This document shows positions 56,150 through 63,421 of a stretch of 64,000 nucleotides of DNA, one piece after another (positions within the stretch are counted from its first letter, which is position 1; every line of letters starts with the position of its first letter). The notes under the pieces were generated by a model. The model had not been told where the DNA came from, did no database searches, and saw only the letters and a program-made list of their open reading frames with translations. The position numbers and the translations under genes are program-made. Source of the stretch: Marsupella aquatica (taxonomy: Eukaryota > Plantae > Marchantiophyta); NCBI GenBank assembly GCA_973895155.1, contig OZ316899.1, positions 767,573 through 831,572 on the forward strand. The letters are read 5' to 3'.

Positions 56150-58246
56150 TATACAGGGTGACCATAGATGACATGTTTTTGTGGTCCAGTCAGATGGAAG
56201 AGAGTGACACGGACATGGGTGAGTATGAAAGGAAAGCTATGGAACATCGAGCATATGTGAAAGCCAAAATTGCAGAACTGGAACTGAAAAAGGTTGTGGC
56301 TTAATTGTAAGGGAACAATTCTCAACCACAACCCTCCGCTGAGTTTGTGTGACATGAATAGTTCAATGTGGCACTAAAATTGTGACTGTATTCTCATATT
56401 GGAATGTCGCAGAGCCACAGAACTTTCAAAGAAACAAAAGGAGTACGCAAGAAGGGTGACCAACACTATCTCTGGGCCTGTGCGTTGGAGTGAAAGGTTG
56501 AGCAAGAAGGTTGTACCTACAATGGCAGAATGTGGAGATGACATGGATGTTGCACAGGTGGGTGCAAACACTAGACAAGAAGATGCAGATGATGAGTATT
56601 TTCCAGAGGAAATGGATGAGGATGGGGGTTATGAAGATGAATACATTGTAGCGCAGCCCCAAAAGAAATAGGTAAGTAGTTTTCCCGACAAGGTTTTGAG
56701 TTAAACTCTCTTGTTTAGAGGTTTGATATGTTCAGTACTACACATATGTACCTTGCTTAGTTTGTGACGTTGTAGTTGGTGATGTGATGCAGCGTCCTGT
56801 CAGTTCTATTTTGTCTGCAAAGCCTGTGCATGCACCATACCAGTAGGGGGGCTGACCTTTGATCAAGGTTGGTGAGGTGGCAATAGTGGTAGATTCCAAG
56901 CTGGTGCCCAATACTATGGCAGGGGGCAAGGTCAAGGTTATGCCCGGGGTAGAGGCAGAGCAGGTCCAAACCCACAGTCTCGTGGGTATGGACGTCCACC
57001 TCAAACATGGGGATGTGAGTATATATCTATATGCCAGTTTTTGTCAAGGCATGGCACTTATGAATTTCAGACTGCACGTCAATTTTTGACATTGTTTGGG
57101 ATGTATTGGATTCACACAACATGAAATTCTGTCCACCTGCCATTGCATGCAGATTCTGCCCAACCTGATTAGGCAAATGCTGGTAATGATCAGTTTCAAT
57201 GTCCACAAGGACAGACATGGGTTGAACCAGGTTGGGAGGATGGTGGTGGATTGTGGAATGAACAAGGTTGGGAAGGTGGTGAAGGTAATTGGCAGGGATT
57301 TCAAAATATAGTACCTACAAACGCTGGAAGAGGGGCAGGTAATGTCTGATCTTGTCAACAATGGAAGAACTCATTATATCTGGAGTCCATTCATGTGGGG
57401 GGATTCTGCACATGTATAATGATAGAAAATGTATGTGTGCAGGTTGGACAGTCAAACCATCAACTCAAGTATTCACTAATGCCCCTATGCAGATGCAGCA
57501 CGGAAGGGGGCCAGGTATGTCAGTGAATGTTCACTTGTTTTCCTACAATTTGTACTTAGTTTTCAGTACATATGTTTGCACATACATACCTAGAAAGTGA
57601 CATCATCCGGCCCCTGTACTAGGCTGGACAGGTGGTCCAGGGTCGCAACAATTCCAGAGTGTAGTCCCTGCACAGATGTCTACAGGCAAAGCTACAAGTA
57701 TATATGTTTGAATAATTTTTGTTGAAGTGAAGCATTGAATGTTGTCGTCATTGATTCTACTGTATGTAGTTCTCAAGCATGAATGGCATTGTATTTTCGT
57801 AGGTGACTTCAGAACCCCAGGTAGGGTGAATCAAGGGGTGGCCAATACACTGCCCAGTACTACCAAGAGCAGTACACAAGGGGAGGTGACAAAGAAAGGG
57901 AACTTAAAGTTGAATGAGAGACAATAGGTGGATGCTGAGTATCCTCGCAAGAACCGATGGCATGCTGATTTGAAAGCTGAAGTATTGCGTTGGTTAGATG
58001 TGAGTATTATTAATTTTAAAAAGCAGCATCCAAAATATTGGAAGACTGTATGTGAAAATGTTGTTGCCAAATGGAATTATGTGGGCAGTGATGATGGCGT
58101 GGACATAAGTTGCCTAGAGAGTACAGCAGGTAACATCATCAAGCAAGAGAGATGGAGAATGCATAAGGCTTGGAAGGAAGGTGGGGAGAAGCCAGATATG
58201 CCTCCACCAGCAAGTTGTGATGATAAAGTGTGGGCAAGGTTAGTAG
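56150..58246 (+). pseudogene. CACTA second gene (TnpA/PTTA-like), multi-exon 5' part with Gly/Trp-rich low-complexity exons
   Basis: GT-AG introns inferred. Acidic segment, RGG/GW-rich exons, RWLDVSII...WNY...KQERWRMHKAW...CDDKVWARLV. Confidence 0.65.
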
Positions 58247-60240
58247 TGTTGTGGGAGAAATGAGACAAAGAGTTGGTTCCATCTTTACTCTTGGTAGAAT
58301 ATGTACATGTGGCTACGGCCTAAGTAGTTAGGGTAGTTACATAGGTAGTTATCCCAAAGGTAGACTTAACTCAAGTATGAGTTACAACACTCCCCCTTTG
58401 TAACATTGGGGTTGAAATGTTACAATCAAGAGTCTACTTTGGGTATACTCAGTGGTATACAATAGGTTTTGTTTATGTCTAGCCTATTTTATAAATGGTG
58501 TAGCCATCTCAAGTCTACTATAAATGAAAAGCTTCTCCTAATAGATGTCTTATAATTCATGTTGCATGGTAAAGTGTAAGTGGGGGATGTAATCTCATTA
58601 AAACCTCCCCTACTTTCTTTGTGGGAGGAAAGAGTATTACCATCCCCATGGGTGAAACATAATTGGATTTAAGTATATAGTGTATGTGTAATTTCTACAA
58701 AGTCTCTTAAGGTGTTTGTCAACACTATAGGCTTGTTGAAGATCTTGTTTCTCGTGTCTCCTTCCAATCGGTAAATGGAGACTCCTTGATGGTCACCAAT
58801 TACATGCCATGACAAAGTAAAGTATTAGTGCAAAACGAAGATGATATGGTGTAATCCATGGCCTTGGAATTGGATTGGGTGTCCAACCCTAGATTTGGTG
58901 TGGGCATAACCTATTTGCACCACATCACGTACCATATCCACAACATAGGGTTATCATATTGGGGTATGGCGCACCATCTCTTATGGTGCCTTACCATGCC
59001 ATGTCTCACCTTATGGTACCTTATGACCTGGTACTGTACCTCATATTATCATATGGTACTTTTATATCCAGTATACCTCATCAAGTATTGGTAAGTGATT
59101 GTGTTAACACCATGTTCAATCATTTATAAAAATTCCTTAGATTTCATGATTTGGCATATGCATGGAATAGAGTTCCATTTTTAGGTATTCATTGGTGCGA
59201 AAGGCACTTGTGCAATAGGCACATCCCATGGGTTACATGGCTTGATGTCTCCCCCTCAATTTGTCATTTACTTCCATGTGCAGTAGGCACTCATTGGCTT
59301 CCATGTGTAGTAGGCACGGCGCTTAACTTTTAAGTGCAGTAGGCACGTTGGGAAAAACAATTCTCCCCCTGAATTTATGAAATTAATTGGTGGAAGTAAT
59401 CATCATTTGTCGCCATGTAGGTTCTGTAATTTAGTTTCTTTCTTTATGTCCTTACTTCATGCCTTGTTGTTTGGTTTTTCTTGCCTTTTGAAGAGAAAGT
59501 CTCTTTGTTCTTTAGTTCTCCATTCCTTAGTGTAAAATGGTCTTCTTAGAAGAAAAGGTAGAGGACTTTCCTTTGGTTTGATGGCTTCTCTTTGTTTGCC
59601 TCCTTTGCCCGGCGTCTCATCTTTAGCTTGTACCACAATCTCCGTCTGTACTGGACGTCCTTCTCTCTCCTGGCGTTCCTCACATTCTCTCTTTGGTTTT
59701 TCCGGTTTGTGCTTCCTTCAATGTTCTTGGATTTATCCTCCTTGCCTTTGGTGCTTATTGTTTCTCCTCTATCTCGCATTCTTTCCTTCAAAGTTTTCAG
59801 TTTCTCCCTTCGCGTTCGATCATGGACTGTCTTTATATGTTCGCGATGCTGCCTGCCTTGCTCACGATCTGCGTTCAATTTCTGTAGCGTCTTCTCTCCT
59901 CCTATCTTTTCAATTGGGAATTAGGCGTATGGGTGTTCCTTATGAATCAATCTTCCGTATGAGGTCGCCTTCACGGACTGGAAATAGGAGGTCTGATGAC
60001 TCGTTCCAAAACGCAGATCTCCATGAACTTACAAAATACAATAGTATTATATACTTCAAATGTGGAACTCGTGCAGACGCGTCAGTATAACCACGTATCG
60101 TCTCGGCAAACGCCCAGTGTGCCTCACTTGGCCCCCGAAACCAAAACATTTTGCGCCTGTCAAGAGAGCTTCACAAATATGATTGACGAAAACTTCCCTA
60201 CATGTCGTCGATCTTGAATGACGGAGCATGCTTCATCTTG

Positions 60241-61182
60241 TTATCGAATTGTAACGTAACGGTTAGTTCGGACATGCTTTGCCCAGTGCTCCTTCAAATC
60301 GACAGGATAATTTACATTTATCCCCTTGCAGCCGAGTTGTTCCAAAAAGTTCATGGAGATCATAGTAGTGCAACACGAGAACTGCCAGCCCCCGTTACCC
60401 CATCTGCTTGCCCATCTATAACAATGTTGTCTCACACCTGTACAGGAGCAGTGGGGAATGGGGTATCGCACATTATCAACGTGAACATCATTGTTCGGGC
60501 CCTTCAGGTAATCGGCCTTGTCGCTATCTCCAAGCTCCAAACAATGCTCCTGGGGAGAACGACATGATCTTTTCAAACGCACTGTGCGATCGAGCGTAGA
60601 TTTCACTATTAGCTTCCTCTTCCTAGGAAAATCCGATCTTGCCAAGGTCAATATTGCTGGACGACGGAGCTCTGCTACTTTTGATAGGCCGACAAGGATT
60701 CTTGGAGTTTTGGGCTGCATGAGGAAACCTGGACAACATCTATGGGAGGAAGAAACCGTCTGAGGCTCCGACGCAAGCATCAGCAGGACCATATATCGAT
60801 GAGTCTTCATCAACCGGCCCTTACGGTGGCTCTCAATATGCTTCTCCTTACACGAAACTAGCAGCCAAGCCGATAACAAAAGGGCTACTCCCAGTCGGGT
60901 GAACCGCTGGCAGGTGTTGCACCTGCCTATGGAAGGCCGGCGTCTGGGTATGGTGAGGATTATGGTCCCTCGCCTGGAGATCCTGCACCTCCTCTTATAC
61001 AAGTCCCCGAACACTTCTGAGTGCAGCATTTGGTCTCTGAATTCTCTTACATTTTTCGCCGCCTGAAATATCTTGAGGAACATTCTCGAGAGTGTCATAT
61101 TGTTGGAATAGGAAGCATTTGCCGGAACTAGTACAACATGAATTTTGGACGGCACATCTTCGTAATCCTTGCCACTGTGCAA
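60241..61182 (-). CDS. BPC: 313-codon ORF ending in a captured BBR/BPC (GAGA-binding, basic pentacysteine) domain
   Basis: PIPHCSCTGVRQHCYRWASRWGNGGWQFSCCTTMISM...LEQL...PVDLKEHWAKHVRTNRYVTIR* matches the BPC C-terminal consensus (CSCTG..CY.WGNGGWQSSCCTT...P.DLK.HWAKHGTN.Y.TIK). The N-terminal part is unassigned and the start is uncertain. Confidence 0.85.
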   Translation of the reverse strand: MHSGKDYEDVPSKIHVVLVPANASYSNNMTLSRMFLKIFQAAKNVREFRDQMLHSEVFGDLYKRRCRISRRGTIILTIPRRRPSIGRCNTCQRFTRLGVALLLSAWLLVSCKEKHIESHRKGRLMKTHRYMVLLMLASEPQTVSSSHRCCPGFLMQPKTPRILVGLSKVAELRRPAILTLARSDFPRKRKLIVKSTLDRTVRLKRSCRSPQEHCLELGDSDKADYLKGPNNDVHVDNVRYPIPHCSCTGVRQHCYRWASRWGNGGWQFSCCTTMISMNFLEQLGCKGINVNYPVDLKEHWAKHVRTNRYVTIR

Positions 61183-61646
61183 AACCTAGGAATTGTATAA
61201 CTTCCGAGGCAATAGATCGCTTCAAAACTGAGATATCGACGAGGCATCATCGCAATTCTGCACTTAAAGTTGACAAAGACACCAAGATCGAGGGAATCCA
61301 TTGCTCAAAAATTTGTTAAAAATGAGAAGAAGACATCCAATAGCAACCATGAAACTTAGGACGAGCGGGATCCCAGCGTGCATAGCCCAAGCCGACAACA
61401 GGCGATGCGGATGCCGTTTGCTCCCAATGTATCCCGCTTCCCCTTCACGCAAGGGCCGCATTCAAGCTAACATCAATGCCATCTTCGTCCACATTCCGCT
61501 ACAATTCAGAGTGCAGAGTGAGCTGCAGCGCTTCAAGCAGCTCTCGCAAAAAAAACTTTGGTACATTCAAATCATGTCTTTCCCTTCTTTCTTCGTCTTA
61601 GAGTGAATCAGTCATGGCCTAAAAAAAATTCAGCCAGTCTTAGGCT

Positions 61647-61659
61647 CGTGCTGATAACG
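61647..61659 (-). promoter_or_regulatory. Half-tRNA type primer-binding site (complement of the tRNA-Ile anticodon stem-loop)
   Basis: CGTTATCAGCACG directly after the LTR end ...ACAACA, a motif I associate with Bianca-lineage copia elements. Confidence 0.7.
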
Positions 61660-61801
61660 TGTTGTGGGAGACTGAGACAAAGAGTTGGTTCCATCTTTAC
61701 TCTTGGTAGAATATGTACATGTGGCTACGGCCTAAGTAGTTAGGGTAGTTACATAGGTAGTTATCCCAAAGGTAGACTTAACTCAAGTATGAGTTACAAC
61801 A

Positions 61802-63421
61802 AGTAGCTTATTTTGTAACAGATGCTTCAAAAAGAAGAGTTCACAGATGACCAAGGCCAGGTTGAGTGTTCAGAACCCTAATTTGACAGGAAGGACCGGC
61901 ACTGCACCGATAGCAAAACGCTTGGTAAGAATCAATGACTAATTATGTAATTTATGCTACACTATGTACTGATCACTTTGTTTTTGAGTGTAAGTTCCCT
62001 AAATAATAATGATAACTTGTGTTTGCCATGCATGTGCAGAAAGCCCAATTGGGGCAAAGCCCTTCAAAAGAAGAGTTGAGGGCTGAAATTGTGAACAATA
62101 GGTCTCAAGAGGGTGCATCTGAATCCTCCAAGCACGTAAGTTATATGAGTTCTAATTGGTAATTGAATGACCTACGTTGAATTTCAGGTGTACACATATC
62201 ATTGATTGTGCATATATTGCCCAACATTTCATATGGAGTGATTGACTATATTCCTGTGTCATGTAGGGAGGAGGATCTTCACTTACAGAGATAAGTGGTT
62301 GTTTGAAGGCTGTGGAAACATGTCTTCCAAAGATCAATGAACGTTTGAATTCATTGATAGACTTGTTCCATGTGAACTTCAAGACATTAATGGAAGCCGT
62401 TGTGTCGGTGAGAGATAAAATTGATTCCAATTTTGCAGGAGTTCCACCATCACCACTTGAGGTGGCAAAGTTGATGCACTCTTCTGGCATGCCAACGACA
62501 TCTAGGCTTGAAAGTAAGGCCTTTATAACTTTGTGAGATATGATTATTAAATGTATAGTTTGAATTGACATTGTTTGTTGAATGTGTTATTTTCAGTAAC
62601 ATATATTATGGTTGTTGTGCCCATAGAGAATAAGACAGGTGTTGCAGAGAAGAAGTGTGAGAACCTGGCAGAGTCGCTACAATTTAGAGGCAACAAAGTT
62701 GTAGTCTGTACATGCAACTAATTTGACAAAGGGCAGTGAACCATGTTTGGTTGAGGATGAGATTGGCAAGGGATTGGATGATATCAATGTTGGGGCAAAT
62801 GAGGATATCAGCAAGCATGACAATGATACCATTGAGCCAGATTCATGCTATGTAGATCTTGACTCCATTGCAGAGATAAATGATTTGCAGAATGTGTCAT
62901 TGTCAATGACAGGTGTGCCTCTGGTTGCGATAAATCCAACCAAAGAGTTAGTTGATATGACACTCCCAAGTGAGGAACCTGCTCCTGTGACAGTCCCAAC
63001 AGAGGAACCTACTAAGCCTAGCTTCACTACTGTGAAGAGAGGAAGCATGCACACACAAAGCAAGTCTACTGCTAGGAGTAGAGCCATGTCAAAGGTTTCA
63101 TACAAACCTCCAAGAACGATGCTGGCAGAAAGATCTAAGGTGGAAGTGGGGAAGGCACCTAATGCTGAGGGACAAAGTGGCTTGTTAGCTGTTGATGAAA
63201 GTGGAACACGAGTAGGATTTGGCAGAGTGCAGGTTGGTTCTACAACGTTCCATGGCAAGAGGATTCCCCCAGGTTATTCAGTAGTGTTAATCACGTTACT
63301 AGTGAAACCTAAAGCTGTCCTTCCCATTCCAAACACAAATGATGATCCTCCTCAGACGACATTTGGAGATGCTGTAGGTTCTTTGGTATTATGGCCAAGC
63401 AAGTTCATAGGGGATGCATAA
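61802..63421 (+). pseudogene. CACTA TnpA-like gene, 3' exons with C-terminal Tnp1/En-Spm-like domain
   Basis: Resumes after the TSD (WARLV|AYF). KARLSVQNP...GRTG, then RVGFGRV...FHGKRIPPG...VLPIP...FGDAVGSLVLWP. Confidence 0.7.

Follow-up and report, generated by a model that had tools for sequence, protein, structure and literature searches.

A BPCV-type gene fragment as probable passenger cargo of a non-autonomous, Bianca-type retrotransposon in the liverwort Marsupella aquatica

The stretch of DNA analysed here, referred to as the window, comprises 64 kb of the liverwort Marsupella aquatica (assembly GCA_973895155.1, contig OZ316899.1, positions 767,573 to 831,572 of the forward strand). 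It contains a complete, non-autonomous long terminal repeat (LTR) retrotransposon of 3,555 bp at 58247-61801, whose sense strand is the minus strand. An earlier note, made from the sequence alone, described this locus as a young copia-type element that had captured and reshaped part of a BASIC PENTACYSTEINE (BPC) factor, and proposed that the resulting open reading frame (ORF) might counter Polycomb silencing as a decoy or as a source of small interfering RNAs (siRNAs). Sequence comparison instead favours a piece of a BPCV-type gene that is probably carried as decaying passenger DNA. The analysed interval was that of the element, and its features, with the duplicated target site on either side, are as follows.

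58242..58246, no strand: target-site duplication, left copy AGTAG (read from the sequence and from empty-site joints)
58247..58389, minus: 3' LTR in element sense, 143 nt, TG...CA (98.6% identity to the other LTR)
58390..58399, minus: polypurine tract, sense AAAGGGGGAG, abutting the 3' LTR (read from the sequence)
58400..60001, minus: 3' internal region of unknown origin (no Pfam match; a tandem repeat and a purine-rich part inside)
60002..60240, minus: stretch from a BPCV-type 3' untranslated region (3'UTR) (blastn, 75% to positions 1755-2084 of BPC locus L001)
60241..61182, minus: 313-codon open frame, TTG to TAA, with ATGs at codons 29, 34, 52 and beyond (ORF list)
60244..60674, minus: BPC-derived coding stretch, BPCV residues ~138-288, RKRK basic stretch and BPC domain (DNA and protein alignment, Pfam, tree)
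60269..60272, minus: 3-nt insertion, WAKHGTN to WAKHVRTN, approximate coordinates (alignments)
60351..60352, minus: junction of a 75-nt deletion, -25 aa (alignments; PMC6477699)
60403..60416, minus: 12-nt insertion, +4 aa (ASRW), approximate coordinates (protein and DNA alignments)
60675..61182, minus: non-BPC N-terminal 170 codons (no relatives found)
61183..61642, minus: leader between primer binding site and open frame, with many upstream ATGs and short upstream ORFs (uORFs) (ATG count)
61643..61659, minus: primer binding site, sense CGTTATCAGCACGAGCC, half-tRNA-Ile(IAU)/Bianca type (sequence, PMC6317226, form of tRNA-Ile)
61660..61801, minus: 5' LTR in element sense, 142 nt (LTR alignment)
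61802..61806, no strand: target-site duplication, right copy AGTAG (read from the sequence and from empty-site joints)

The young LTR element of the earlier description is borne out by its ends. A single substitution and a single 1-nt indel distinguish the two LTRs, each of which runs from TG to CA, the 5-bp target-site duplication (TSD) is perfect, and both the primer binding site (PBS) and the polypurine tract (PPT) lie on the minus strand in the same orientation as the ORF. Contigs from four public runs (organisms coded A-D) were aligned to the element interval, and those of runs X3, X5 and X6 (organisms B, C and D) join 58241 precisely to 61802 with a 5-nt overlap. These empty-site contigs are paralogous copies of the very high-copy flanking repeat that received the element, and their joints provide confirmation of the insertion and of its borders that does not depend on aligning the LTRs. 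The repeat that served as insertion target (57750-58241 and 61807-62300) has a summed contig depth tens of times that of the element, and the 106 codons directly to the left of the insertion gave no match in Pfam.

The sequence CGTTATCAGCACGAGCC occurs once in the window. The plus strand at this site reads ..TCGTG-CTGATAA-CG and has the shape of an anticodon arm with the loop C-U-[G/I]AU-A-A, U33 and the anticodon [I->G]AU, which we take to match the sequence of tRNA-Ile(AAU). Among Bianca elements of the Ty1/copia superfamily, 92% use a PBS against a half-molecule of inosine-edited tRNA-Ile and 96% have a 5-bp TSD (PMC6317226). The form of the PBS and the 5-bp TSD found here fit this description, and the label of a Bianca-type PBS given to the element is therefore right, as is the placing of the PPT (AAAGGGGGAG) beside the 3' LTR. 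The PBS gave no match as a partial tRNA in Rfam, and ARAGORN detected no tRNA genes in the window. When compared with the Bianca lineage as defined in REXdb (PMC6317226), the element shares the half-tRNA-Ile (inosine) PBS, the 5-bp TSD and the TG..CA ends, but it lacks GAG, PROT, INT, RT and RH and, at 3.6 kb, is shorter than the 4.2-8.6 kb reported. With no pol domains present, its probable placement in Bianca is by PBS, TSD and ends. Pfam searches of ten other long stop-free stretches on both strands gave nothing significant, in agreement with the earlier statement that gag/pol is not recognisable, and GAGA_bind is the only Pfam family in the element. No autonomous partner or other related element lies elsewhere in the window. 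The 3' internal region contains a TCATTGACTTCCATGTGCAGTAGGCAC-like unit of 27 nt, present three times in tandem at 59264-59346, and is purine-rich on the sense strand at ~59540-59900.

The TTG that opens the 313-codon frame directly follows a stop codon, and the first ATG is codon 29. The Pfam search that had been suggested for this ORF returned GAGA_bind (PF06217, cut-off 26.6 bits) at E 4.4e-26 and 93 bits, in two stretches. A sense-strand ORF ending in a BPC domain had been described, and this stands for codons ~170/185-313, which are BPC-derived; it does not extend to the whole ORF, as the N-terminal ~170 codons are not. All five cysteines (C245, C247, C254, C270 and C271) and the native stop position are retained as stated, and the three in-frame indels of the earlier description could each be aligned (+12 nt, ASRW; -75 nt, 25 aa; +3 nt, HGTN to HVRTN). 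The ASRW insertion stands between Cys3 and Cys4 and resembles an imperfect tandem duplication of AGATGGGGTAAC. The 75-nt deletion takes out YPLPMNPTKRGSRLAGRKM..AFE together with the invariant PLP and RxxGRKM positions, leaving the cargo without the RxxGRKMS motif, and in the broken WAKHGTN motif G is replaced by VR while the terminal TIR is retained.

RxxGRKMS and WAR/KHGTN are among the three most conserved BPC signatures, and the latter is needed by AtBPC1 for DNA binding (PMC6477699); of the domain's three invariant signatures, two are thus lost from the cargo. When 48 BPC proteins from liverworts to angiosperms were compared, 32 positions were invariant, and 9 of these are lost from the cargo. 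The cysteines of the domain are reported to mediate dimerisation, in the passage of PMC6477699 that cites Theune 2017. BPC residues 1-~137 are missing, and the N-terminal coiled-coil/dimerisation region of liverwort BPCs (IAERDAAILERN...) showed no similarity to the ORF in any frame or on any strand. In predicted models (AlphaFold), the host-type domain reached a predicted template modelling score (pTM) of 0.49, with the segment deleted here in its ordered part, and the element version reached 0.29; both predictions are of modest confidence and give a weak indication only. No solved BPC structures were found in the PDB.

The cargo was further compared with two BPC loci, L001 and L002 (Calypogeia fissa), and is 12-15% diverged from such orthologues. 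DNA homology to both spans ~60674-60002; it is strong from 60629 down and weak over 60630-60674. The coding stretch is 87.5% identical to L001 and 83.6% identical to L002, and in blastn the homology continues ~230-240 nt beyond the stop of the L001 gene into its 3'UTR. At the protein level, the closest relatives are a 288-aa liverwort protein from a Logan contig (68% identity), a protein of Calypogeia fissa (59%) and MpBPC2 (53%). In the tree, the cargo falls inside the BPCV clade with MpBPC2 and Jungermanniopsid relatives (Shimodaira-Hasegawa-like approximate likelihood ratio test, SH-aLRT, 99), and the BPCU clade is separate (100). Moreover, the cargo shares residues diagnostic of BPCV (NVRYPIPHCSCTGVRQ., NVNYPVDLK) and the BPCV stop position. 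These comparisons identify the captured piece, on sequence grounds, as the 3' half of a BPCV-clade gene, with ~140 codons from its end and ~240 nt of its 3'UTR.

MpBPC2 (MpVg00350) has been renamed BPCV; it lies on the V chromosome as the gametolog of Feminizer (BPCU), which determines sex in liverworts, and the separation of the BPCU and BPCV clades dates to the ancestral liverwort (PMC8699743, PMC11132968). The cargo differs from BPCV/MpBPC2 in that residues 1-~137 with the conserved coiled-coil and RxxGRKMS are absent and WAKHGTN is broken, and also in that it resides inside a transposon and is multi-copy. We observed BPCV-type (288 aa, L002) and BPCU-type (305 aa, P0017) genes on different large contigs of Calypogeia fissa, which agrees with an old age of both gametolog clades in liverworts.

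The first 170 codons of the ORF are of a different nature. BLASTP of this part against the BPC N-terminus gave E=18, and a six-frame comparison with the two BPC loci gave no similarity. A HMMER search of 1.8 billion representative proteins yielded a repeat-type match only, no relative was present among 5.8 billion protein clusters, and an Atlas search with the 170 codons likewise returned none. The protein language-model recognition score of this part (Atlas) is low, and codon periodicity of the coding type is absent from it. Two contigs of organism A match the element from 60725 rightwards only and carry unmatched letters on the BPC side; one contig of this kind has a net 1-nt deletion that would shift the frame relative to the ORF. 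Contigs that match only from 60725 hint that the N-terminal part is itself a mosaic, and 60725-~61017 may be a separate, unrelated module that is also present in other contexts. Translation of the plus strand at 60723-61017 gives a Gly/Tyr/Pro-rich peptide interrupted by a single frameshift, for which there was no Pfam match, no usable Atlas match and no family; a second captured gene in antisense at this position would be conjecture.

The element family is multi-copy. Multiplicity was judged from distinct contigs, and summed contig depth was not read as copy number. In organisms A and B, distinct contigs number 4-11 per ORF position, none of them identical to the window copy, and at each listed ORF place 1-7 short contigs, in many cases more than one, depart from it, so the single-copy state that the earlier note had held to speak against its own proposal does not apply. 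Contig coverage is deepest in the 3' internal region (58400..60001), which is also the most widely covered region in organisms C and D. Structural variants include the presence or absence of ~185 nt beside the PPT (58398-58594; organisms B, C and D), a derivative with an 893-nt deletion (58744-59638; organism A) and the replacement of 60013-60071 by TTGTTCCAAAA (organisms A and B). In organism D, a piece of ~50 nt around 58590-58640 occurs on its own in great abundance. At the protein level, a search for sister copies with the C-terminal 124 aa found lycophyte BPC only, an exact look-up of the ORF product returned nothing on record, and metagenome scans with a protein pattern and with a 24-mer across the deletion junction found nothing.

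A 14-nt perfect inverted match (AGATCTCCATGAAC) connects 60016-60029 (+) with 60352-60365 (-); one arm is at the far end of the 3'UTR-derived stretch and the other is exactly at the junction of the 75-nt deletion. In the RNA fold, it closes a 14-bp long-range stem (z -2.6). The match may have been left behind by the rearrangements through which the cargo took its form.

Substitutions were counted over 124 aligned codons as lineage-unique changes, with two host-type BPCV genes of other liverworts as reference. The element lineage has 9 synonymous and 15 nonsynonymous changes (omega ~0.48), as against 10/5 and 17/8 in the two genes (omega ~0.15; Fisher p=0.036 against the element), and in the protein tree the element branch is 3-5 times longer (0.26 versus 0.05-0.09). 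In the contig comparison, nine places in the ORF are among the best-supported differences listed, and 245 further places are spread over the whole aligned interval. At these nine places, the window copy stands apart from all or nearly all of the other contigs, and its private states give 7 nonsynonymous codons against 1 synonymous codon; this ratio fits neutrality and has a binomial probability of ~0.003 under an omega of 0.15. The first two ATGs (codons 29 and 34) are private to the window copy, as all other contigs there read ACG and AGG, and the first ATG of the ORF is preceded by 19 others, 16 of which are downstream of the LTR, with uORFs of up to 65 codons. A/T in the window copy where other contigs have G/C is about twice as frequent as the reverse, which fits deamination decay of a silenced, methylated repeat. 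None of the public runs listed as containing the sequence is recorded as RNA. Taken together, the substitution data suggest that the cargo evolves under relaxed constraint.

We therefore favour, with a probability of roughly 0.6, a decaying BPCV-type passenger cargo captured by a transducing, non-autonomous, Bianca-type element. On this view, an ancestral copy would have acquired residues ~138-288 and ~240 nt of 3'UTR of a host BPCV-type gene, most likely when reverse transcriptase switched template onto a co-packaged host mRNA. The family would then have spread in trans through the proteins of an autonomous Bianca-type partner, carrying the BPC piece as passenger DNA that had lost the N-terminal coiled-coil half and was presumably released from constraint. 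The 313-codon frame would combine unrelated sequence with the BPC piece, no stop having closed it so far, and in all likelihood the element does not depend on any protein encoded by it. Of the earlier proposal, the part that stands is that a mobile element captured and remodelled part of a BPC gene. A working counter-silencing device does not follow from this, given an N-terminal part of 170 codons for which no relatives were found and which looks unlike protein, the missing coiled-coil half, first ATGs that the family does not share, the many upstream ATGs and the relaxed constraint. The loss of RxxGRKMS and WAKHGTN does fit the description 'DNA-binding-defective', but it equally fits plain decay, and the idea of an anti-Polycomb decoy or siRNA source has no direct support and is made less likely by several indirect lines.

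Several observations nevertheless sit uneasily with passenger cargo. The frame is open through 313 codons, and under a first-order Markov model the 170 non-BPC codons would be free of stops by chance with a probability of ~0.0005; in the two remaining sense frames there are 11 and 5 stops. Each of the three domain indels has a length divisible by three, for which the chance is ~1/27 if lengths are random, and at the nine listed ORF places no other contig introduces a stop. In addition, five retained cysteines combined with lost DNA-contact motifs are what a dominant-negative protein would also look like. Pure neutrality leaves the open frame, the in-frame indels and the kept cysteines unexplained, and for this reason two rivals were kept, a remodelled host paralogue and a selected product.

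According to the first, the cargo is a retrocopy of a chimeric host paralogue that was derived from BPCV, had gained a new N-terminus and was already remodelled before capture, such that the frame and the indels were inherited from selection in the host. This would account for both the 170-codon open extension and the three in-frame indels without selection inside a transposon, and the BPC genes compared here are orthologues of other liverworts only, at the 12-15% divergence given above. However, the N-terminal part looks unlike protein, and neither the 1.8 billion representatives nor the 5.8 billion clusters hold a relative of it; the contigs that match only from 60725 suggest a mosaic, and the ATGs are not conserved in the family. 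We consider this origin unlikely.

Somewhat less probable still is that the cargo acts as RNA only, with small RNAs from many silenced copies damping the host BPCV mRNA, and perhaps that of BPCU, in trans, either as a by-product or to the benefit of the element. Transposon-borne gene fragments do yield trans-acting small RNAs, as in rice, where miR820 from CACTA elements targets DRM2, and in the siRNAs of Pack-MULEs. A multi-copy family with a BPC coding piece in sense orientation and a 3'UTR would offer suitable material, and since orthologues from other species already match the cargo at 84-88% DNA identity, the gene of the host itself probably matches it more closely. Contrarily, such an effect would be hard to tell from noise, and the element has no long hairpin; a hairpin as siRNA source was considered and rejected, as there is just the 14-bp long-range stem described above.

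The selected product would be a translated, dominant-negative BPC that poisons host BPCU/BPCV dimers and thereby either weakens Polycomb recruitment to GA-rich targets, transposons included, or disturbs BPC-dependent sexual development. The biology needed for this exists: BPCs recruit Polycomb (PMC6477699), BPCU sets sex in Marchantia (PMC8699743, PMC11132968) and works via chromatin repression of SUF (PMC8699743), and PRC2 represses transposons in Marchantia (10.1101/2022.10.24.513474). The frame that is open against the odds, the in-frame indels, the retention of five cysteines alongside the loss of RxxGRKMS and WAKHGTN, and the amplification of the family would all be expected. However, five cysteines would survive ~15 replacements by chance about half the time, and the amplification of a non-autonomous element requires no function of its cargo; moreover, there is no conserved start codon, 19 ATGs lie upstream, constraint is relaxed, the predicted element domain is less confident than that of the host (pTM 0.29 versus 0.49), and no run listed as containing the sequence is recorded as RNA. 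A dominant-negative role is thus very improbable, and the same low standing is given to the broader idea that any product of the family, whether a DNA-binding-dead and dimerisation-competent BPC fragment or small RNAs, interferes with host BPCU/BPCV and so loosens H3K27me3 silencing of transposons or perturbs sexual development. The element as a bait for BPC through GAGA motifs can be dismissed, as its 4 hexamers compare with ~3.8 expected from the density in the window and show no enrichment.

The capture of gene fragments by LTR retrotransposons is well known in plants (PMC13317346). The passenger-carrying element described here resembles the transducing elements among them, such as maize Bs1, the rice and sorghum captures (Wang 2006, Jiang & Ramachandran 2013, both as cited in PMC13317346) and the longer Veju variants of terminal-repeat retrotransposons in miniature (TRIMs), in its intact ends, its PBS and PPT, and a part of a host gene that includes the 3'UTR. 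It also resembles them in having been amplified together with its cargo and in the possibility of a chimeric ORF; the longer Veju variants are products of aberrant template switching. It differs from them in its liverwort host, in a cargo that is the DNA-binding half of a BPCV-clade BPC factor, and in an ORF that remains open through 313 codons despite three indels.

With respect to silencing, the likeness to known systems is one of concept. VANC of VANDAL/Mu elements (Fu 2013, as cited in PMC13317346) is a transposon-linked protein that acts against chromatin silencing. ALP1, which was domesticated from a Harbinger transposase, binds PRC2 and counteracts silencing by Polycomb (PMC4671723), and thus shares the Polycomb target. 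Polycomb antagonism by a transposon-derived protein therefore already has a precedent in concept in ALP1 (PMC4671723). Both VANC and ALP1 are conserved, expressed and shown by experiment to act, whereas the ORF of this element shows no sign of expression or constraint, and the mechanism here would involve a captured fragment of a host factor and not a transposon protein. If it were true that the open frame or its small RNAs act on host BPCs, this would be the first transposon to turn a captured Polycomb recruiter against its host, but the evidence favours inert cargo.

What is noteworthy, then, is the liverwort host, a cargo from the clade of the gametolog of a sex determinant, and an oddly persistent frame. 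The finding documents gene capture by an LTR retrotransposon in a liverwort. Moreover, dispersed and amplified BPCV-like fragments can mislead analyses of orthology and sex linkage in which BPC genes serve to mark the oldest stratum of liverwort sex chromosomes.

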